39,761 bases of DNA from contig ADNK01003187.1 of NCBI GenBank assembly GCA_000320545.1, positions 1 to 39,761 on the forward strand. Reading direction: 5' to 3'. Both the position numbers and the translations under genes were made by a program. The notes under the pieces were generated by a model. That model was not told where the DNA came from and made no database searches. It saw only the letters and a list, made by a program, of their open reading frames with translations. Source of the DNA: Bigelowiella natans CCMP2755. Its lineage: Eukaryota; Protista; Cercozoa. Shown one piece after another: positions 23,439 to 36,670 of the stretch; the stretch's first letter is position 1; every line of letters starts with the position of its first letter.

Positions 23439-24970
23439 TATGACATTCGTATATGTAACAAATCATGGCCGTTTGCTATGAGACATCTTAACGCAATGCA
23501 AGCGAACATGTCTTGCTGATACGAGTGAACTGCGATATACACTGCCCTTAAGCATTTTTACCCATTATCAACTTGCAAAGCAAGCGTAATGTTGATAGAT
23601 GAACCATGTGCTAGGAAGTGACAGCTACAGTTTGCATGCAGGGCAAAAAAGCGCTAGCTACGCTAATCTTTGCACCACGTGGTAAGCAAGCAATTTGAGA
23701 TTGAAGATCGCATCGCCTTACGTCTCTTGTGCTTCGATCCTCGCTCGTCATGGATCGTGTCGTAGCATGACATGTGCAGGTGCTATGCGTACACGAGCTG
23801 CATTCGAACTGTGACCACAACCGCGTCTAGATGTGTGTCGTGATGTGCTAGTGTGGGCTGTGTGGGCAACGCAAAAGCCTCCGCCAAATGGCCACAGGCA
23901 GAAGCTTCTCGCTTTGATCCTGACATGTCATCCGACGCAATGCAAGCAATGCGTCACAGTGCAGCTAGCACAACCACCAACGCTGCCAAATGCGAACAAA
24001 CACGAGATGCAGATGCACGGCATCAAGATCTACGACTAGACGAGCTAGCATTGTTTTGAAACTTTGTGAATGGCACAGGCACACTACTAGCTGTGATGCG
24101 AATTTGTTTGTCCCCATGCACATGACCGCATGCCATCATCATGCACACTGTGCATGTGTCATCATGTCAAATGGAAACGTCAAGTGACAGTTTGTTGTCA
24201 GCGCGCGCTGAGACGTGCTGGCGTGTGGAAGTGCAGTTCATGAGTTCATTTCACGATTGCACGGCCCAGATTCCAGATTGGCAAAATCAGCAGTGGACTG
24301 GAAAATCACCACTTCCATGCTTCAACGCACAGAAAATCAGTCTGTCACCTGCGATGCGCTCCAGCTTTCACTTTGCATTGTTGCAAGTCGACGGGTCCAT
24401 CCACAGCCATTCAAAGTCGTGGATTCCACACGCACTCGCCACGCTCACTCAATCACTGAGTCCATTCGATCGATTTGCACCATGGTGTGTGCATTTTGAG
24501 GTCCTCATGACGTCATTTTTTTCACCGCCAAACTTGCACTGCCGTTGGATTGGGTCAACAAATGCGGTCTCCGGATCGCTCCTGTGGAAAATGAACGACA
24601 GAAGCCAGCAATTCCAATGTGCAGCTGAAAAGATCGTGAGATGCGCAACTCCCCTCCTCAATTGTCAAGACCACAGACCACCAAGGAAAGTTGATGATTT
24701 GTTTCACACACGCCAGCCAAGTGCAGTGACCTGGCAGTCCACAGCGCAGCAGTCAGAACTCTTCAAATCATTCAAAAAAAAAAAGCCTTCATTCCAAAAA
24801 AAAGGCCTTCTGCCGAGAGGAAATCCCAGGCGATTTTTCCCACTTTTGCACCCAATCGACTGTGTTTTTCTCCATTGTGGCTCTTTCCAGAACGTGCGAC
24901 ATGCAATTTTGGATGTCGCACAGGTAAATAATGTGCGCATTTTTGTACCGGAAACCATCCAGGAGAAGAA

Positions 24971-26934
24971 ATGATGGCCCCTTCGCTGTCACCGGTGCCT
25001 ATCCAACAATGCTCCCAATTCGTGGAAGCGTTGCTGTTCTTCCTGGCAGCTCCTTTTTGCTTTGGCAATAATTTCGACTTTTGTTTAGGTGACGGGTCTG
25101 GCCCTGCTTCTCTCCCTCTTGGTGGTATGGAGTTCCTTCTCCCAACGTGGAGATAGGCTTGCTTCTCGATTCTCTGCCCGGAAAGCTGGATCTTCTCGCC
25201 ATGGATCGGTCGTAGGATTCAACGCTATTTCTTACCCTCTTACACACAGAAGGGGGGTTATTACCCCGGCTTCATCACCTTTGCAGCAACCCTCGTCTCT
25301 AAATGCTCGAGTTTCCTCAGCCTCAGCAGCGTGGGGGGGGTACCGCCCCAGCTTCCGTTTTGCACAGGTAAGAGAGTCATTAGACATTTTTGGAAATTCA
25401 TTCGAATACATCTAGCAATTTTAAAGTAACACATCATCTTCGACTTGTTATTCATCCGGCCTTTATGGTTTGCGGCGATATGCGGGAGAGGTCATACAAT
25501 AATATAGCCATTGGTCGTCGCACAGGGTTTTCGATCAGTGAATGCGTTGGCCAAGAGGAAAAAAGGAGGGGGAGGAGGCGGCGGATCTGGAGGAGGAGGG
25601 GGGGGTTACAAATCGCCCGGTAAGGTCAAAGAAGGAGACGCTTACTCTCAGGAAACCCGGGAGATAATCCTCTCGATGGTATGTTACAGAGTGTATATAT
25701 ATTACAGAGGATACAAAATATTTATAATATTGTAAGGACACACATTCACACACACACTCACACTCACACATGCATAAATACACGCAGGATCGTGTTTCCA
25801 AAACTGCTCCGAACGGGAAGAAGCTACTCTCAGACGTGTCCCTCGGCATGTAGGAGAACGCAACACAAACATATCCGCAAACTGCTGTCACCAAGCTCCT
25901 ACCCGCCAAGATCAACAACATCACCAACACCAGCAATAAAAAAAAAATTGACCATCAACAACATAGGGAGAAAGTGAGAAATGAGAAGCTAAATTCACAC
26001 GAAAGGTACTTGGGAGCCAAAATCGGGATTCTCGGCCAGAATGGGGCCGGAAAGTCCACGCTGCTGCGAATATTGGCGGGCGAAGATACAGACATCGACG
26101 GAGACGTGACTCTGAACAAGGGAATAAAGATCGGTTACCTTGAGCAGGAACCCACGCTGGAGGACGGCAAAACCGTGCAGGAGAACCTCGAGGCGGGCAT
26201 GAAAGAAATGCGTGCTCTGGTTCAGGAGTTTGAGGAAGTTTCGCTGAAGCTGGGAGATCCCGACGCAGATACCGACTCGCTCATGCAGGTGTGTCTTCAT
26301 GTCGGGTGATGGCTGATGCTTTTTATGATTTCGATATGCGTGAGGCGGAGGTGGCCGTCGTTGCCGAGGAGGCGGCCACTACAAACGCTCGCAATCCGTG
26401 CGTCTTTCAATGGTGCATTGGGAAGCATCGCTGCCGCTGCTCCGACTCACTTTTCTCACACTATTTGCCCTCCCTCCCCACCTTGCCCGCAGAGAATGGA
26501 CACGCTCCAGACTGAGATTGATAGCTGCAACGGGTGGGAGATCGACCGCATCCTGGATCAAGCCAGCGACGCTCTGCGGTACTATTAGCGCTGCTATCTT
26601 TCTAATTACCACCTCGTCAATAACAACGATGACAAGGATGATAAATGGGGCGGATATTATGTCCATGATTTGACCTCGTGCCCCCCTGTTCTCTCCCTCA
26701 CCCCGCCCCTCCCCCTTCTCCCCAGATGCCCCCCCGGCGACGCCCTGGTTGAGAACTTAAGCGGTGGGGAGCGAAGGCGGGTGGCCCTCGCGAAGTTGCT
26801 GGTGTCCAATCCTGACATTCTGCTGCTCGATGAGCCGACGAATCACCTGGATGCTGAGAGTGTTGCATGGCTAGAGACCTTCCTCAAAGAGTAGTACTGC
26901 AGCATCAACCTCCTCTCTCTCTCTCTCTCCCTCC

Positions 26935-26969
<35 letters not shown>

Positions 26970-27539
26970 CTCCCCCCCCCCCCTTGCTAAAACGCGATTG
27001 CTTTTAGGTACCGGGGAACGGTAGTAGCAGTGACGCACGACCGCTACTTCCTCGACGCCTGTGCTGGTTGGATATTGGAGCTTGACCAAGGGAAGGGCAT
27101 TCCTTTCGAGGGCAACTACAACCAATGGCTAGAGGCCAAGGCTGCACGCCTTGAGCAAGAAGGAAAGGTGTGCGTGTCTAAAGTCAAAAGGAATGACCAG
27201 AACGATGATAGACCGCACGATATAAATATATATATAATTGCGTCCAAACGCTCCCCGCCACCGTTTGCTTCTTCATCCTCCTCTTTTCTCTCCCTCCCCC
27301 CCTCTCCCCTTATTTCAGAACAAAGCCGCCCGTGAGAAGGCCCTCGCGAAGGAGCTCGAGTGGGTGAGAAAGCAGCAGAAGGGCCAACAGAAGAAGGGAA
27401 AGGCGAGGCTGCGGCGTTACGATGAGCTGTTGGCGGAGCAGGAGCAGGAGGTGTCTCGATCCAACCTCGACGGCATCACCATCCCGGCTGGGCCGCGGCT
27501 AGGCGACATCGTGCTGCAGGTGCATGATCGACGTGTGAA

Positions 27540-27573
<34 letters not shown>

Positions 27574-28474
27574 TGCGCGCACGCATTTTAGATGGTTGAT
27601 TGTGCTCGCTCCTTCCTCCCTCTTCACAGGTGGATGGGCTCGCGAAGTCATTCGAGGACCGGCTGCTCTACGAGGATATGACGTTTGCGGTGCCTCCCGG
27701 TGCAACCGTCGGCATCATCGGCGGCAATGGGGCAGGGAAGACCACTCTCTTTCGAATGATCACGGGCGATGAAAAACCAACCAAAGGTGGAGGGAAGAGG
27801 GGTAGGGGGGGGGGGGGGTGCTCTGTAGAGTAGTGATGCACTCGATGTGTCTATATCTCTTGTGGTAGTAGTAGTAGTAGTTGTAGTAGTAGTTGTAGTA
27901 GTAGTAGTAGTAGTTGTTGCTGTTGTTCGATGAACCTGCCTGCTCCTACACCCCGAACAGTCGTATGGCATCGTCTCATTTTCCCTTAATATTTTCACCC
28001 ACACACACACACACACACACGCCACACACGTGCCTTCCTTGCTGCCAGGCGAGATTACCCTCGGACAGACGGTGCAGCCCATGTATGTCGACCAGTCACG
28101 CGACGACCTGGACCCCGAAAAGTCGGTCTTCGACCAGATCGGGGGGGGGGATGAGGAGGTGGATCTCGGCGGGAGGCGGATCAACACGCGCGCATACTGC
28201 ACTTGGTACAACTTCCGCGGGGCCGACCAGTCGAAGAAGGTTGGAACGTTGTCCGGGGGCGAGAGAAACCGCCTCCAGCTTGCCCAGGCGCTGCGCTCGG
28301 GGGGGAACCTGCTGATGCTCGACGAGCCGACGAATGACCTCGACGTGGAGACGCTCAGATGCCTCGAGGTTAGTGGTGGAGGGAGGTGTGGGTAGGGCAA
28401 TGGATCGTGCCATGCTCGTTTACTTGCCCCTGCCTTGAATTTTACGACGGGCACGCACATAGTGTGTGTGATAG

Positions 28475-28892: not shown

Positions 28893-29780
28893 CCGTCGTA
28901 GAATTTGTTGGAGTAGCATGTAGTGGTGGTACGAGGCACTAGATGTTTCTGGCGACATGTAGCACGGTCTGGTGTATGTGCATTACATAATATTGTGTTT
29001 ACGGATAAGTTACATAAGGCCGCATATGAACAGCATCTAGCTAGAGCATCTTCCCTGCTAGCGCATGGGAAAAGCACAACACCACTCAGTGAGACTGCCA
29101 AAATGCACAGCGCGGGCGCGCACAGAACGCAAGAAGCACACCCACTGCTAGACCAGAAACACGCACACGACATGCTAGCTAGCATGCACTTCTAGATGCA
29201 TCACGACAGCAGCACACTGGCTCTGGAGTGCAAGCTAGCAAGGTAGCGCAGTCGCACGAATGCAGTCGATCAGCTTAGCGCTGACTGTCAATTTGCGCAA
29301 AAACGTGCATTCCTAGAAACAGGCCCACGATGCACGACTGCTGCACGAGTCTGACGGCCATGCTGGCATGCGCTAGCTCCAGTGCTCAGTGCTGGCCACG
29401 CAAATGAACACGATCGAACACACCAGCACATCGTCGCCATCGCATCGACGATGTTGCGATGCGATTTGTCCAACTAGCCGCAGCGTCCTCCATTGTCTCA
29501 ATTGTTCACCTGCAACACTTGCGTGCACGTGCATGTGCGATGCGACATGCAGCATGCACAGTCTGCTAGCAGTGCACGCATTGCACGTGTGACAAAAATC
29601 GATCAGCTTGCCAGCGCGCCTAGCAGATGCGCTAGTGCGCCATTGTTGGCATGTCCACGCCAGCACGCTGGCATGTCTAGATGTGCGTGCATGTGATTTG
29701 TTGCTGCATCACTGTGTGTGCCACACACGTGATGTCCAACATCACCGTGTGTCAATTGTGAGTGTGGGTTCCGTTCTGGT

Positions 29781-30202
29781 TGCAACGGCGGAAAATTCAA
29801 AGGAATTTGACCGTTGAAAGTGGTCAATCAAGTCAAGTTGATCCCGTTGAAATGCCCTGCAGTTTTGGCAGTTTTGGGTTTGGTTGGTGCTGTCAGTTGA
29901 TGAGCAAATTGAGTCATCAAATGGGAAGCAAGTGGTTTGGGAAAACCAAGTTTGTGTGCACGCAGCTGCCTCGATTGGTCAATGGCAGCGAACCCGCACC
30001 TGGCAGTCAGTTCGCTAGAAGTTTGAAAGCGGTCAGTGTGTTTGTTTGAGCGTGCACATGCGTGTGTTCTGAAGTCACCAATGTCATCAGGGTTTCATTG
30101 TTCATTGGAAAGTTTGATTGTTTTTGCTGAATGAGCGGCGACGAGCTTGCTGGTTTGGCAGAGACAGAAGCCGACACTGGGAGGATGCTCTCAGTGGTCG
30201 CA
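29781..30202 (+). repeat. 5' LTR (422 bp)
   Basis: TGCAACGG...GGTCGCA. Matches 35868-36289 except at 3 positions by manual alignment. Confidence 0.96.
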
Positions 30203-33200
30203 GATGGCAGCGGCGCAGTGGAAGGAAAGGAAAAAGTGCCAGAGGTGATGCACATTGAAACAGGAGGACCTGTTGCTGCAGGTGCTGCAGGTGACTTGAA
30301 GGAATCCAATTGGCAGGAAGTTCTGCTCAGGATGGAAATTGACAAGTTTCGAATGGTCCTGGAAGGGGTGTCCATCCAGGAGAAACTGGCGGTTGATTTC
30401 AACAAGGATGTCCGCAGCTTGCGAGACAATCGCAGTTCCCGTAGGTTCTTCATGGATCGATGTGGTGACAAAGGAGTGCCGGAGAAAACGTGGAAATGCT
30501 TCACAGAAAATCCGGAAGTAGCGGAGGACTTGACAGACGAGGAAGATGCAACGGTAGCAGAGGAAAAGAAACAAAATGAAATGCGAGAACAAGACATCGG
30601 GGACCACCGAGGAATGTCTCACAGAGCGAAAGCTGTGGAAATGTTCGGAAAGAAAATGAAGGTGAGGGGAGAACTAGACCCAGCCTTCATTTACCGTGAA
30701 AAGTTTCGGAAGAGGGTGAGAAGAATCCAGAGTCAAATCGCAGGGCACAGCGAACTCTTTGGAGCGGATGTGAGATTCGGATGCGAGTTCTTCCGAACGA
30801 TATTGTCCCAGGATGCACGGGACAGATTCGACCTGTACGTTAAAAAACAGGAGAAGGAACGGCAATGCCAAATGGATCATCGCGAGAAACTCGAACAAGG
30901 AATGCAACACCTGTGTGGCGAAGAGTCCCCGCAAGACACAAGGTTTGGGTTTAACAAGGAGTTTGATAAACTGCGAAAGGAGAAATTCAGATTTGTAGAC
31001 CAAACACATAGCAAATACAAACAAGTATGCAGTCTGTTCCCGACATACAAGATTGACAGGTACGACAGGATGAACCATTACAAAATACTATTGCAAAACC
31101 ACAGATATGGTCGATCCCTACTCCTAGCTATGGCACATTACGATACCACGGGTATGACTCCAGCCGAACTCTTCAAACAGCTGAGAATTAGAGAGGAAAT
31201 AATTCAGGAGTCACAACCGAAATACAATAGTGTGAATGCAATTGGAATGGAAGGGAATAAGAAGAAGAAGATCTGCTTCAACTTCCACAAAAAAGGAACT
31301 TGTCGATATGGAAATGAATGCAAATATAGTCATGAGAAAGGAGGGAAGTCTAACAGGCTGTGCAAATATATTAGAGAGGGAAAATGTAAATGGGGCAAGA
31401 GATGTAGATTCTCGCACGACCTAGGGGATAAAGCGGCAAATTTGTCGAAGGTCACAGTGGATGCGAGTTACCCCAAAGTAAACCCTAGCCCCCATCCCTC
31501 TTCTAATACCTTGAATAGTGACTGGAGGGAATCCGGCAAGGACGTAGTGCAAACTGTGGAAAACGATATGACAGAGTTAGCAAAAATAAATATCCCACAG
31601 GTCAACATCGCCTCTAAGCCCTACAATGCAAATGAGTCTTTACGCCAACGCAATGTGCTAAGGGTATTTGTGGAAGGCAAGAGTGGACCTGCTGAGATGA
31701 AAGCACTCCTTGACGATGGATCGCAGCCTACCACCATTAGCCTGCAAAAGATCAAATTGCTCAGTAAGCTAGGTGTAAAAATGAAAAGGACAAAGATGAG
31801 TGGCCAGGTTAGAGGTTTAAGTACTACCTGTGTCCGCATGGAGGGTGAGGTGGAATTTGAGATAAGAGTGAAGTGCAAAACCGCTCGGGGGGGATACGTA
31901 AGGCTCAGGATTTTTGCTATAGTCCTGGATGGGAATGTAAACTTTGAATTTATAATTGGCCAAGATATGAGAAACCTATACCGCATCATGTCGTACCCAG
32001 ACCCCAAACCCGAACACCGTAAAGTCACAATTGATGGCACACCTGTTTGCTCTTATCCCTGCACTTCTCACCTTCGAAATGCGAACTCACTTATACTGGA
32101 AAGCAACTTGCTGGCCTTGCCTGCAGTAGCCCAGGATGCGGGTGTTAACGAAGGTAAACGAAACAAAGCTAAAAGGCTATTAAATTCATGTCTAGTCCAT
32201 GAAACACTCGACCTGTTAGATGCAGCGGATTCCCGATTGAGAGAGTGCGACCACGTCTGCGGTACGGGGGTACCTGATGAGGAAATTAAACATAGTCTCG
32301 GCAAGATCGTATCGCTCCAATACGTCCATAGAGAATCAGAACGTACCAATGCGGAACTTGCTTCGGGAGACTGCTTGCGCATGCTGAACAGAGTGGAGAA
32401 AGAGTTCCGCGCGGGTTCCACACTCATGACGTCAAGAGAACAATTTTGTTACCTACGTCGTGTCCTGTGTCGTTGTTCGTCGCGATTTGTGGAAAATGCA
32501 CCTGAGACAGGAGAATTGCGTGTGCCGAAACACGAAGTCCACGATTGCCTTCTACCAGGAAAGAAATTTGTGCACCAAAAGGCTCACCGATTGCCCCCGG
32601 ACAGATTGAATGCGATGGAGACTGAGTTGGAAGAACTGGAAAAACATGGGTCATGTTGTGAAGTGTCGAATGAAGAAAAAGTGACAGCCACTTCACCTGC
32701 ATTTCCTGTCTGGGACAAAGGCAAGAGCACCTGTCGGGTGGTCATCAGCATGAAAAAGGTCAACGATGCTGTGGAATTGATGCACTTCGTTGTGCCGATG
32801 ACGGAAAACACCACACGGAAAGCAATGACGAAAAACTGGGTGACATCAACCGACGCTAAATCAGGCTGGCCACAGATGGGGTGCACAAAGAAAACGCAAA
32901 TGACCTTCGCATTTGCAACTCAGAAATGTGCTAGATCAAGTTTGGGCCTGCCATTCGGACACAAAAATGCTCCTCAGATGTTTGCGTGGTTGATGATCCA
33001 AATCATCAAAGGACTCAACGACACTGTGGTTCATGTGGATGATCACTGCAACATGGGGGACACGTTCATGGCAGCATTGTTGGAGTTCACCAGATTTGTG
33101 CAGAGGGCTGAGACCAAGAACTTGTGCCCATCTGCTGAAAAATCACAAGCGTTTCCAAAAGAGTTGTCCATGGTGGGAGTTGTCAGGAAAAATGGCAAAC

Positions 33201-35752
33201 ATCACCCAGACCCGAAGAGGATGCATCCCCTGGATGCACTCCAACCACCTGAAAAGGGAGCACGATTCCTCAAATCGGTGCAACGCATCATGGGATCATT
33301 CATCTGTCATCCACGATGTGTCAAAGACTTCTGGAACATCATTCGACCTGTCAGCATCCTGAATTCAAAAACAGCTCCACAAGTCTGGGGAAAAGAACAA
33401 CAGATGGCTTCAGATGCTGCGAGGGATGTGCTGAAGTCTTCGTCTTTGCATGTGCCCAAGTTCGAACACATCACCCGTGAGAGTCCATTCCTTGTGGATG
33501 TGGATGCGTCCAAACGTGCTGGTGGAGCTGCTCTGTCTCAAGTGGTTGATGGGGTGGAGCGCCTCACATGTTGCTTCAGCTTCACCTGGCGCAAACATCA
33601 GATGAAATGGCACGCAATGAGAAAAGAATTTGACAACGGTGCTAGGAGTCTGGACTGCTTCAGCATCTTCATTGAGGGATTTCCAACGCGTGCAAGAATG
33701 GATGCAAAGGTTGCCATGCACATGGTGGCACATGGACAAGATCAATTGCGCGAACCTCACACCAGAATCTCCGCAGCTTGCAACTCGCACATGCCAGTGG
33801 GTGTTGAACACAGAGAGGGCCCGAGCCACAAAAATGCGGATTGCATCAGTGGGCCTGGACACAGTGTTGAAGATGATGCGGATGAAGAAACACTGGTCAA
33901 TCTCTTCCCTCTCCACCATGCTTCGGCAATGCTCAAATGCTTTGGTGATGAATCAAAAAATGGCACCTGCTTGAGCTGCAACCAACCGGCAGTTGGACAC
34001 CATCCCACAGATGCAGAGGTTGAACTTGCTTGCTCACAACTGTGTTGTGATGTGGCGAAGAAGGTGGGCTTTGACGAGTCCAAGTTTCGCATCCTTTTTG
34101 AAAGGATGAACACAAAAAACAAATCAAACCAGAGCAAGCTCACTCCTGAAGTTGATGCTGCGCGCTTCGACGGGGACTCAATGATCCACCCGTGCTCCAC
34201 GTTGGCGCATGAAGCAGATGAATGCATGGAGAACTGTGACACAATGGAATGCGGAATGGAGTTCTCACCTTTGCAGTCGGACAGTGTGGAGGTGGAGCTC
34301 AAGTGCGATGCATCATCTGAGCGCCTACCTGCAGAACAACGGGCAGAGTTCACTGAAATGTTCGCAGCTCTGGAAAATGAAGGCAATCCAAATCATGCTC
34401 TTGCTGCGGCACAATGCAAAATTGTGGACAATGCCTTGCACAAGTGCGGCGACTGTGAGAACGACGACCACAGTGTCCCTTTGCTCATTGTGGTTCCTGA
34501 TCAATGTCGGACTGAAATCATGGACGCCCACCACACAACGAATCTTGCAAATCACAGATGTGCAAATGACATGGCAACAAAAATCCTGCAAGCACATTGC
34601 TGGAAAGGCTTGACGCATTCATGCAAAAAATGTGTTGCAACCTGTCAGGCATGCATCAGAACAAAATCTCGCATGAAGCAATTGCCTTGCAAGCAGCTGC
34701 AGATGAGAGGAGCAATGGAAGCCGTGTCGATTGATGCCATTGGACGCATGGAAGGAAAGTGTCACCACATGCTGAATGCGTGCACCTTGTCGACAGGATG
34801 CATTTTCGCGAAACACTGCAAGAAACTTGACGCTGAAGTCATGGCAGAGTTTCCATTCGACTTCATTGTCGTGTTTGGTGCACCTCGTGAGATCCTCACT
34901 GACCAGGGACCTGAATTTGTGAACAGCGTCATGTTGCACTTGAAGAACAGATTCGGTTTTGCAAAACTCACCACATCGAGCAAATCCAAAACGGGCAACT
35001 CACTGATTGAAAGAAAGAATGGAGTGCTCAACAACGGAACATTGGCACAGCTCACACAACAGTCTGAATCGAGACACAATTGGCACAAAGAATCACCTCA
35101 TGCTGTCTTCTCAGCCAACACTTTGTTGCCCAATGCTCGAGGAAACTCGTGCGCTGAGCTCCTGTTCGGGTTTCAACCCAAGTTGGAAGGAGACTTGAAC
35201 GGCAAACGTGCACCTGTGAGAGAGGAGAAAGTCGGAGACGACATTGACTCTCGCATTCAAATTGCAAAGAAGATGAGACAGTTGTTCCTGACGGATGGAT
35301 CTGAATGGAGATTCTTGAAAAACTTCAAACGCAATGACAAGATGGGGCAACTGAAACGATGCAAAGTGGGGGATCCAGTGTGGTTGTGCCGTGATGAGGA
35401 CCGCAAAGGGCATCGTGTTGCTCCGCATTTCGCGCTGAAAAAGACAGGCCCCGTCCTGATCACAGCGAGCATCAGAGATTCCAACACTTGCAGAGTGGAA
35501 GATCCTGAAACAAGTCATCGAAACGCAGTTCATGCAAAGTGCTTGTCTCCCTTTGGCACCTTCACAGCATCACCGGAAGCTGCAGTGCCACCACAGGATG
35601 AAGCGTCTTCGTCGGAGAGTGATCAAGATCTGTTCAATGATTCATCGGGGGATGAGGAAGAAGAGGATGATGCTGACATCAGTGCACGCAACGTTCTGAT
35701 GCACACTCGTGCCCGCAAGGCACCTGATCGTGGAGCCTTCGTGTCACATTGA
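30131..35752 (+). CDS. Gag-Pol polyprotein (1873 aa; open frame but probably catalytically dead)
   Basis: Two CCCH fingers (31271-31420), protease ALLDDGS (31703-31723), RT (DAKSG, LPFG.KNAP, HVDD at 33032-33043), RNase H (VDAS..GGAALSQ, NAD), integrase HHCC and core (SID, TDQGPEF, IERKN). The first ATG lies inside the LTR, so the real start may be downstream. Confidence 0.9.
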   Translation: MSGDELAGLAETEADTGRMLSVVADGSGAVEGKEKVPEVMHIETGGPVAAGAAGDLKESNWQEVLLRMEIDKFRMVLEGVSIQEKLAVDFNKDVRSLRDNRSSRRFFMDRCGDKGVPEKTWKCFTENPEVAEDLTDEEDATVAEEKKQNEMREQDIGDHRGMSHRAKAVEMFGKKMKVRGELDPAFIYREKFRKRVRRIQSQIAGHSELFGADVRFGCEFFRTILSQDARDRFDLYVKKQEKERQCQMDHREKLEQGMQHLCGEESPQDTRFGFNKEFDKLRKEKFRFVDQTHSKYKQVCSLFPTYKIDRYDRMNHYKILLQNHRYGRSLLLAMAHYDTTGMTPAELFKQLRIREEIIQESQPKYNSVNAIGMEGNKKKKICFNFHKKGTCRYGNECKYSHEKGGKSNRLCKYIREGKCKWGKRCRFSHDLGDKAANLSKVTVDASYPKVNPSPHPSSNTLNSDWRESGKDVVQTVENDMTELAKINIPQVNIASKPYNANESLRQRNVLRVFVEGKSGPAEMKALLDDGSQPTTISLQKIKLLSKLGVKMKRTKMSGQVRGLSTTCVRMEGEVEFEIRVKCKTARGGYVRLRIFAIVLDGNVNFEFIIGQDMRNLYRIMSYPDPKPEHRKVTIDGTPVCSYPCTSHLRNANSLILESNLLALPAVAQDAGVNEGKRNKAKRLLNSCLVHETLDLLDAADSRLRECDHVCGTGVPDEEIKHSLGKIVSLQYVHRESERTNAELASGDCLRMLNRVEKEFRAGSTLMTSREQFCYLRRVLCRCSSRFVENAPETGELRVPKHEVHDCLLPGKKFVHQKAHRLPPDRLNAMETELEELEKHGSCCEVSNEEKVTATSPAFPVWDKGKSTCRVVISMKKVNDAVELMHFVVPMTENTTRKAMTKNWVTSTDAKSGWPQMGCTKKTQMTFAFATQKCARSSLGLPFGHKNAPQMFAWLMIQIIKGLNDTVVHVDDHCNMGDTFMAALLEFTRFVQRAETKNLCPSAEKSQAFPKELSMVGVVRKNGKHHPDPKRMHPLDALQPPEKGARFLKSVQRIMGSFICHPRCVKDFWNIIRPVSILNSKTAPQVWGKEQQMASDAARDVLKSSSLHVPKFEHITRESPFLVDVDASKRAGGAALSQVVDGVERLTCCFSFTWRKHQMKWHAMRKEFDNGARSLDCFSIFIEGFPTRARMDAKVAMHMVAHGQDQLREPHTRISAACNSHMPVGVEHREGPSHKNADCISGPGHSVEDDADEETLVNLFPLHHASAMLKCFGDESKNGTCLSCNQPAVGHHPTDAEVELACSQLCCDVAKKVGFDESKFRILFERMNTKNKSNQSKLTPEVDAARFDGDSMIHPCSTLAHEADECMENCDTMECGMEFSPLQSDSVEVELKCDASSERLPAEQRAEFTEMFAALENEGNPNHALAAAQCKIVDNALHKCGDCENDDHSVPLLIVVPDQCRTEIMDAHHTTNLANHRCANDMATKILQAHCWKGLTHSCKKCVATCQACIRTKSRMKQLPCKQLQMRGAMEAVSIDAIGRMEGKCHHMLNACTLSTGCIFAKHCKKLDAEVMAEFPFDFIVVFGAPREILTDQGPEFVNSVMLHLKNRFGFAKLTTSSKSKTGNSLIERKNGVLNNGTLAQLTQQSESRHNWHKESPHAVFSANTLLPNARGNSCAELLFGFQPKLEGDLNGKRAPVREEKVGDDIDSRIQIAKKMRQLFLTDGSEWRFLKNFKRNDKMGQLKRCKVGDPVWLCRDEDRKGHRVAPHFALKKTGPVLITASIRDSNTCRVEDPETSHRNAVHAKCLSPFGTFTASPEAAVPPQDEASSSESDQDLFNDSSGDEEEEDDADISARNVLMHTRARKAPDRGAFVSH
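30205..30216 (+). other. Putative primer-binding site
   Basis: TGGCAGCGGCGC begins 2 nt after the 5' LTR. It resembles TGGTAGC-type initiator-Met PBSs with a TA->CA change. The cognate tRNA is not verified. Confidence 0.45.
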
Positions 35753-35850
35753 ACTTGCAATGGAAGTCCAAGTTTCCAAGTGTTCCGTTCAGTTTGTGCA
35801 AGTGCACATGGATTGTTGCATCAAGTTGGTTTTGCGACGTCCGCAAATTC

Positions 35851-35864
35851 AAAAAAGGGGGGAA
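35851..35864 (+). other. Polypurine tract
   Basis: AAAAAAGGGGGGAA, 3 nt upstream of the 3' LTR. Confidence 0.85.
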
Positions 35865-35867
35865 TGA

Positions 35868-36289
35868 TGCAACGGCGGAAAATTCAAAGGAATTTGACCG
35901 TTGAAAGTGGTCAATCAAGTCAAGTTGATCCCGTTGAAATGCCCTGCAGTTTTGGCAGTTTTGGGTTTGGTTGGTGCTGTCAGTTGATGAGCAAATTGAG
36001 TCATCAAATGGGAAGCAAGTGGTTTGGGAAAACCAAGTTTGTGTGCACGTAGCTGCCTCGATTGGTCAATGGCAGCGAACCCGCATCTGGCAGTCAGTTC
36101 GCTAGAAGTTTGAAAGCGGTCAGTGTGTTTGTTTGAGCGTGCACATGCGTGTGTTCTGAAGTCACCAATGTCATCAGGGTTTCATTGTTCATTGGAAAGT
36201 TTGATTGTTTTTGCTGAATGAGCGGCGACGAGCTTGCTAGTTTGGCAGAGACAGAAGCCGACACTGGGAGGATGCTCTCAGTGGTCGCA
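35868..36289 (+). repeat. 3' LTR (422 bp)
   Basis: Direct repeat of 29781-30202, preceded by a polypurine tract and followed by TSD CTGGT. Confidence 0.96.
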
Positions 36290-36670
36290 CTGGTTTCCCA
36301 ACAACTTCATTTGCATGTTCCTTCACAGACACCAAACATGCATGCCTCCTCCATGTTTCGAAACCGTCGCGTGTGCGTTTTTTGCAATGCACACAATGAC
36401 AGGCAGTGGCACGTGAACACAACGAGTGAACGCTCTTGGGCCCCAAGCAAAGCTGCATTGTGAAAAGATCATTGCGTTTTCATGCATGTGGCAAAGGCAA
36501 ATTGCAAGCCTTGTGTGTTTGCACGTTCTTTTCTGGTTTTTCACACCATGTGTTTTGCTTCTTTTGCACACGTGTTCTTGTGACACACGCGTGTTCATAA
36601 ACACACACGTGCACTAGAGGCCATGTTTCATGGTCCTCATCGCCATCAAGTGAGCACCTACCGGCCAATG

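Follow-up and report, generated by a model that had tools for sequence, protein, structure and literature searches.

How can a retrotransposon lose nearly every TpA step from its pol gene while its reading frame stays open? This question is raised by a stretch of the Bigelowiella natans CCMP2755 genome, i.e. contig ADNK01003187.1 (assembly GCA_000320545.1, forward strand), which was analysed over its full length of 39,761 nucleotides and is hereafter called the window. The element at positions 29781-36289 is a Ty3/Gypsy long terminal repeat (LTR) retrotransposon, and the TA-depleted stretch at 32456-35867 is the part encoding its reverse transcriptase (RT), RNase H and integrase. Very probably, the TpA-specific A:T>G:C hypermutation of B. 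natans struck the pol half and the 3' LTR of this young element after it had integrated into the chromosome. The phenomenon itself is already known. A preliminary description of the locus was aware of no such system, while TpA hypermutation has in fact been described for B. natans in a preprint (Mettrop et al., bioRxiv 2026, doi 10.64898/2026.01.13.699255).

In that mutation-accumulation study, 231 of the 302 nuclear mutations fell within two integrated viral regions, and A>G or T>C changes, which the authors place on TpA, made up 230 of these 231, at a rate of around 4-6e-7 per site per generation; the events were seen in some lines only, clonally grown (doi 10.64898/2026.01.13.699255). The same authors reported 124 TpA-depleted clusters genome-wide, with the depleted genes enriched for reverse-transcriptase and DDE domains, described the process as confined to regions and independent of copy number, and put forward one ADAT2-like candidate deaminase. 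A full-text search of the preprint found no LTR elements or retrotransposon copies, copy-by-copy comparison, flanking-base context or CTAG, and likewise no strand-run tests, domain borders or flank spreading, remobilised erased copies or environmental sequences. What is added here is the context order, the strand-neutral flank effect, the lack of strand runs, the ends-first spread, the remobilised erased copies and one environmental contig.

TpA loss from pol and the sister copies

An exact recount of 32456-35867 (3412 nt) gave five TA dinucleotides (at 32553, 32857, 32932, 33643 and 34326, with no others) against 216 expected from base composition, i.e. an observed/expected ratio (o/e) of 0.02; these are the same five positions that had first been found by hand, against an expectation then put at roughly 200. 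The o/e of TG and CA was 1.82 and 1.51, respectively, while that of CG was mildly low (0.66). Along the 4.1 kb main tract the o/e of TA was 0.00-0.09 and that of CA+TG 1.5-1.8, well past the cut-offs used by Mettrop et al. (TA ≤0.43; CA+TG ≥1.52). Mutation has reached 221 of the 227 ancestral TA sites in 32456-36290; the other six remain TA in a CTAC, CTAG or GTAG context. At the protein level, the final tyrosine of the 1873-aa open reading frame (ORF) is residue 774. The 1099 residues after it have no Tyr, 4.4% Cys and 4.6% His, as the preliminary description had noted in general terms, compared to 48 Tyr, 1.8% Cys and 2.9% His in the equivalent part of the unmutated sister copy L002.

The stretch is present in 20 public runs from 16 studies, 14 of which hold at least half of the sampled words. 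In the contigs of two DNA runs, all 30 bins were covered at ≥97% identity, and the variant pieces were CA<>TG alternatives belonging to sister copies. The runs are probably the mutation-accumulation lines of Mettrop et al. and therefore represent independent sequencing of the same strain, not independent strains. Raw data had been named as a place where TA might reappear at the erased sites; the contigs of the independent DNA runs carry the erased sequence. As independent short-read runs reproduce the sequence, it does not stem from errors of assembly or base calling.

The genome (91.4 Mb, 3736 contigs) harbours five further full-length copies besides the one in the window (L001), and each of the six is flanked by its own perfect, differing 5-bp duplication. 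Real copies, i.e. L002 for this family and L024 for the second family treated below, served as the states for comparison instead of a consensus or ancestral sequence. The six copies form an erasure series. The interior of L002 has normal TA, pol is partly mutated in L003, L001 is mutated in patches, L004 is mutated along its whole length at around 83%, and erasure is complete in L005 and L006. The copies do not share one Tyr-free, TA-free sequence, and the differences between them are TA-biased. Between L001 and L002 there are 254 substitutions; A>G changes in TA account for 124 of them and T>C changes in TA for 102 (226/254, 89%), so that TA>TG and TA>CA dominate about equally, as had been predicted; the same two changes make up 266 of 296 differences from L002 in L004 and 322 of 407 in L005. 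The strand-symmetric, near-saturating process that was proposed from the window alone is thus supported.

At 245 of 337 TA sites, some copies have CA and others TG, which shows that TA was the ancestral state and that each copy was mutated independently. Double changes to CG are rare (around 10 of around 1,220 mutated-site states); a site is thus converted once and then ceases to be a target. The TG:CA counts per copy were 118:92, 126:123, 148:151 and 134:171. Runs tests on the order of outcomes along the copies gave z values of -0.76 to +1.83, i.e. no strand runs, and the outcomes of well-sampled pairs of copies were concordant at 0.49-0.58 of sites. The half-mutated pol of L003 showed no nucleosome-scale period, just a broad regional gradient.

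Cytosine methylation was considered as a source of CpG decay and rejected: the CpG counts of an erased and the intact copy are practically unchanged (133 vs 130), and the lower CpG o/e is a by-product of the rise in GC content from 43% to 49%. The process also runs opposite in direction to fungal repeat-induced point mutation (RIP), so that the distinction from both 5-methylcytosine decay and RIP, drawn already from the window, stands.

Could the element simply avoid TA, e.g. as an escape from nucleases that target TA or from transposons that insert there? The open 1873-aa frame and the 99% identical LTRs could indeed suggest a functional, recently active element. The frame is uninformative in this respect, since TA>TG/CA cannot create an in-frame stop. 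Moreover, L002 and two environmental relatives, one from Tara Oceans (84% identity) and one from seawater (53%), are TA-normal and rich in tyrosine (63-72 Tyr), and conserved Tyr positions became His or Cys at random among the erased copies. Together with the independent short-read data, this leaves natural avoidance or selection, or an artefact of sequencing or assembly, with practically no probability.

Six of the seven motif changes first listed as TA-transition products agree with the comparison to L002 (YYW>HCW, KYV>KCV, EYR>EHR, YKVGDLV>CKVGDPV, NTY>NTC and LPYA>SPHA). The seventh, YVDD>HVDD, has to be withdrawn: HVDD instead of YxDD is found in all copies and in the unmutated Tara and seawater relatives (L052 and L053), and is thus native to the RT of this family. 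The family also natively carries tandem CCCH fingers in gag instead of the usual CCHC knuckle, again shared with both relatives.

The element in the window, its domains and their timing

The assignment to Ty3/Gypsy is based on the TG..CA ends of the LTRs, the 5-bp target duplication, a primer-binding site, a polypurine tract and the order gag, protease, RT, RNase H and integrase. When CTA/TAG survivors are disregarded, the window-wide TA profile shows three TA-free zones (23791-24924, 29026-30691 and 32451-36597), the last two of which belong to the element and its flanks. The features are as follows.

29776-29780: 5' target-site duplication CTGGT, the same five nucleotides flanking both LTRs
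29781-30202, plus strand: 5' LTR, 422 bp, TG...CA, TA-erased
29026-30691: 5' TA-free tract, comprising 750 bp of upstream flank, the 5' LTR, the leader and the start of gag; the only survivors are TA of the CTA/TAG type
30131-35752, plus strand: gag-pol open frame of 1873 aa with CCCH zinc fingers, protease, RT, RNase H and integrase
around 30900-32380, plus strand: spared island of around 1.5 kb with normal TA density, covering C-terminal gag and protease
32451-36597: main TA-free tract with RT, RNase H, integrase, polypurine tract, 3' LTR and around 300 bp of downstream flank
35851-35864, plus strand: polypurine tract, a stretch of purines that stops 3 nt short of the 3' LTR
35868-36289, plus strand: 3' LTR, 422 bp
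36290-36294: 3' target-site duplication CTGGT
23791-24924: single-copy TA-free tract without a recognisable transposon; survivors CTAG and CTAC only

As its first ATG falls within the 5' LTR, the gag-pol frame probably has its true start further downstream.

Evidence for action on integrated DNA comes from the LTR pairs and from the flanks. Within copies, LTR differences are nearly all at ancestral TA sites, i.e. TA versus TG/CA or CA versus TG, and the pairs of L002, L003 and L004 diverged at such sites after insertion. The two LTRs of L001 differ at three sites, two of which have CA or TG in the 5' LTR and TA in the 3' LTR. In addition, the erased tract of every copy extends 0.3-1.5 kb into the flanks, and the upstream flank of L001 (29000-29780) occurs only once in the genome. 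Because the LTR pairs differ almost solely at TA and single-copy flanks are erased, the process acted on integrated DNA; DNA-level action on transposons or silent DNA, proposed in the preliminary description, is thereby supported. Repetition is not needed, since both this flank and the tract at 23791-24924 are single-copy and yet erased.

These observations bear directly on an RNA-level explanation, in which an ADAR- or ADAT-like enzyme would edit UA in the element RNA before reverse transcription into new insertions. A 5' U is favoured by ADAR and by TadA/ADAT, as also argued by Mettrop et al., and some erased sequence did pass through retrotransposition, given that the LTR outcomes are identical in L006 (all sites) and largely so in L005 (5/6) and L001 (5/5 doubly mutated sites). 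RNA editing would, in contrast, leave the sense strand with one type of change, while A>G and T>C are equally frequent there; nor would it reach LTRs after insertion, single-copy DNA other than retroelements or unique flanks, or produce the de novo events in integrated DNA-virus sequence of clonal lines. We therefore consider RNA editing highly improbable as the main cause. Under hypermutation of integrated DNA, the shared LTR outcomes of L006 and L005 indicate that the LTR had been erased before the last transposition, i.e. that erased copies were mobilised again, presumably in trans.

L002, untouched inside, still has mutated LTRs; element ends appear to be hit first, with the domain then spreading into the flanks. 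The borders differ: that of the spared island in L001 is sharp on the 3' side (32344 to 32474) and fading on the 5' side. The idea that the island is a conversion patch from an unmutated copy of the L002/L003 type is not supported, as it keeps a non-TA variant shared only with L004 (element position 2168); the difference in non-TA divergence (3/1266 vs 22/3028) is not decisive. Around 0.7 kb upstream of the erased tract, an ABC-ATPase-like host gene with a duplicated Walker B-type motif (26815-28368) has normal TA density, so that the domain border spares this neighbouring gene. The tract at 23791-24924 contains a 277-aa ORF (24141-24974) without a Pfam match and is probably an old relic of foreign DNA.

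One raw-read RNA run was inspected over 35862-36600, where reads of the 3' LTR and reads of the flank beyond around 36236 have opposite first-mate orientation (52 reads). This hints at divergent transcription from the LTR, at very low depth and with pol essentially uncovered.

The measured rate of Mettrop et al. corresponds to around 1.1e-5 per TA site per generation, i.e. 99% TA loss in around 4e5 generations, and thus explains the saturation at this element. Over the same time the background would amount to around one change per 6.5 kb, which fits LTRs that are near-identical outside TA sites.

Flanking-base context, other families and environmental relatives

While TA erasure as first described is real, it is not uniform: the rate depends on the flanking bases, and CTAG is nearly immune. 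Rates in L003, which is lightly hit, and in L004, which is intermediate, follow the order WTAW > GTAH/DTAC > CTAH/DTAG >> CTAG, with the following mutated fractions in L004.

WTAW: 91 of 93
GTAH/DTAC: 104 of 115
CTAH/DTAG: 68 of 101
CTAG: 0 of 11

GTAC was mutated at 14 of 17 sites and CTAG at none of 15 (p = 1.5e-6), so that the effect is sequence-specific and reflects neither a general stability of G:C flanks nor simple duplex breathing. Each C 5' of the T, equivalent to a G 3' of the A, lowers the rate around threefold, and the effects are roughly multiplicative. This slow flank has no strand skew (174:170 in the Gypsy family and 61:61 in the second family), and in the Gypsy family no consistent effect of the flanking bases on which strand changes was found. 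If a factor read a single strand and disfavoured just C(-2) or just G(+1), the rate would be halved at most and the strands would be strongly skewed, neither of which is seen. The strand-neutral flank effect thus leads us to infer a sequence-reading factor that recognises the site in double-stranded form.

The de novo events of Mettrop et al. give experimental support for slow CTA/TAG sites. A hand tally of the trinucleotides in their Table S2 (scaffold 10) is as follows.

A>G: TAA 32, TAC 22, TAG 3, TAT 34
T>C: ATA 33, CTA 17, GTA 30, TTA 35

A mutated A with a 3' G accounts for 20 of 206 events (9.7%), compared to a background of 20% in unmutated DNA (p ~7e-5), i.e. a relative rate of 0.42, which underestimates the slowing because the viral region is already half depleted. 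In the three busiest mutation-accumulation lines, strand runs were not significant (z = -1.17, -1.24 and +0.30). Four T>C events in Table S2 have triplets without TA (three ATG and one ATT), whereas according to the text of the preprint all are TpA.

The same TA>TG/CA spectrum, again without runs, is found in a family of the long interspersed nuclear element (LINE) type with a 1179-aa frame (L024-L049). Its surviving TA are only in CTA/TAG contexts, and CG doubles occur at 6 of 471 mutated sites. Erasure is graded inward from the common 3' end (L041), and 5'-truncated copies are completely erased. By contrast, in an abundant retroelement family with a 1659-aa frame (e.g. C1179:22365-22790), identical RT scores were obtained at ≥100 loci, so that at least its RT appears unmutated despite the copy number. 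In a third RT cluster (L020, L022, L046 and L048) the RT core is fully TA-free in all four copies examined, with no unmutated copy among them.

An environmental relative with the same signature is the metagenome contig L050 (accession number OZSS01003905.1), whose encoded pol is 64% identical to that of the Gypsy family. The o/e is 0.22 for TA and 1.62 for CA+TG, 427 residues are without Tyr, and of the 63 TA that remain, 56 have a CTA/TAG context. Most frequent among them are TTAG (21) and CTAA (12), ahead of CTAG (9), and the mutator of its host may thus have a slightly different flank preference. With a nucleotide identity of only around 70% to the B. natans genome, L050 comes from a related element outside this assembly, possibly of another strain or species. 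No relatives were found in a scan of viral contigs, and a literature search on the OZSS01 record gave no result.

Mechanism, candidate enzymes and comparison with known systems

Any mechanism has to meet several constraints, i.e. a four-base context with CTAG immune, a strand-neutral flank, one conversion per site, gradual action, and ends hit first followed by spread. As the copies show, each TA step is converted once, to TG or CA at equal odds, and is afterwards non-TA on both strands, with every site resolved independently of its neighbours and of other copies. Conversions build up gradually over many generations, and not in a single burst. They are confined to domains that take in the element ends (LTRs and LINE 3' ends) together with 0.3-1.5 kb of neighbouring unique DNA and whose borders are sharp or graded; such domains may be marked by chromatin state or small RNA. 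The rate is set by the 4-bp duplex context, fastest with A/T flanks and almost nil at CTAG, both strands being slowed equally. The chemical step is most probably adenine deamination on either strand, the resulting inosine then becoming G on replication.

Six-frame searches of the genome revealed six loci of the CDA fold. The five that could be scored are all TadA/ADAT-like and lie on the five contigs C980, C3623, C3286, C1679 and C3588, while the sixth (L015) spans introns; two TadA-like loci have HAE...PCPMC in a single exon. One locus of the ADAT1/ADAR type and several C5 DNA methyltransferase loci were also present. Locus L014 (G000:C980:63831-67133) begins with a TA-free tract of 719 bp, and its TadA-like exon, with HAE...PCPMC, lies around 800 bp from that tract; this proximity may be a coincidence. 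A double-strand reader accounts for the strand-neutral flank effect better than a single-strand deaminase of the tRNA type would. It is tempting to speculate, tentatively and with rather less than even confidence, that the hypermutator reads a 4-bp duplex site of about the form [not C]-T-A-[not G] and alters either strand at random, i.e. that it is a sequence-specific double-stranded DNA enzyme, either a DNA adenine deaminase of a new eukaryotic kind or a base modifier specific for TA, instead of a tRNA-type ADAT2, and that it also operates in other marine protists (cf. the erased L050).

A pathway of thymine or adenine modification at the palindromic TA, e.g. 5-formyluracil pairing with G, or a symmetric mark with mutagenic decay, would leave much the same footprint. 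That footprint is formally the twin of CpG decay (palindromic, domain-limited, 50:50 TG/CA, without runs and with a strand-neutral flank), and the mutation of GTAC but not of CTAG speaks for sequence-specific recognition over simple duplex breathing. We know of no TA-specific DNA mark in B. natans. Tet/JBP and MT-A70 had no match in the six-frame genome search, in which the control genomes were equally silent. The presence of TadA-like deaminase exons at five loci speaks against such a pathway, which we regard as unlikely. Methylation motifs reported for chlorarachniophyte giant viruses (ISME J 2026) are RCGY, TGCA and CANNNNNNTG, with nothing on TA.

Several points weigh against hypermutation of integrated DNA in its strictly strand-symmetric, deaminase-based form. 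The LINE-type family has a weak excess of CA (191:141, p = 0.007), which is absent in the Gypsy family, and the Table S2 events include 3 TAG against 17 CTA (p = 0.003); neither is predicted by strict strand symmetry. A single-strand reader disliking both C(-2) and G(+1) would give the same result as a duplex reader. Judged from sequence, the results would fit adenine deamination, thymine modification or mispairing equally well. Finally, the identical LTR outcomes at the doubly mutated sites of L001 (p ~0.03-0.06) are suggestive only, but part of its erasure may predate its insertion.

Among known systems, that of Mettrop et al. is the same in being TpA>TpG/CpA, A:T>G:C only, regional and independent of copy number. 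The settings differ, with two integrated viruses there and copies of an LTR element here, as do the candidates, with one ADAT2-like enzyme there and five TadA-like loci here.

Fungal RIP is alike as a genome-defence-like, DNA-level process whose context-specific transitions riddle transposons with missense changes. RIP turns CpA into TpA, while the B. natans process destroys TpA. RIP also requires duplicated sequence and a premeiotic dikaryon. In B. natans, in contrast, single-copy DNA is hit, the RT of a family with ≥100 loci appears unmutated, no stop codons are made so that frames remain open, and the process is seen in clonally grown lines (doi 10.64898/2026.01.13.699255).

Hyperediting by APOBEC3 and ADAR in animals likewise leaves clusters of deaminase-type transitions in retroelement copies, and ADAR prefers a 5' U. 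Those enzymes act on cDNA or RNA before integration, and their changes are strand-asymmetric and clustered, whereas the changes in B. natans are strand-symmetric, site-independent, post-integration and reach unique flanks. Methylation-driven CpG decay shares the conversion of a palindromic dinucleotide to TG/CA at 50:50 on the two strands, gradually and in silenced domains, but the target here is TpA, with CpG counts unchanged.

The locus offers a clean natural experiment: six insertions of the same element, all dated, cover the range from no erasure to complete erasure, and a second family stands beside them. A programmed, sequence-specific A:T>G:C mutator directed against foreign DNA would be rare among eukaryotic genome defences, and might yield a natural DNA adenine editor. 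Since frames are left open while every tyrosine is destroyed, gene prediction in the B. natans genome will be misled. If the speculation on a duplex-reading enzyme holds, TA-free elements would be immune and could keep spreading.

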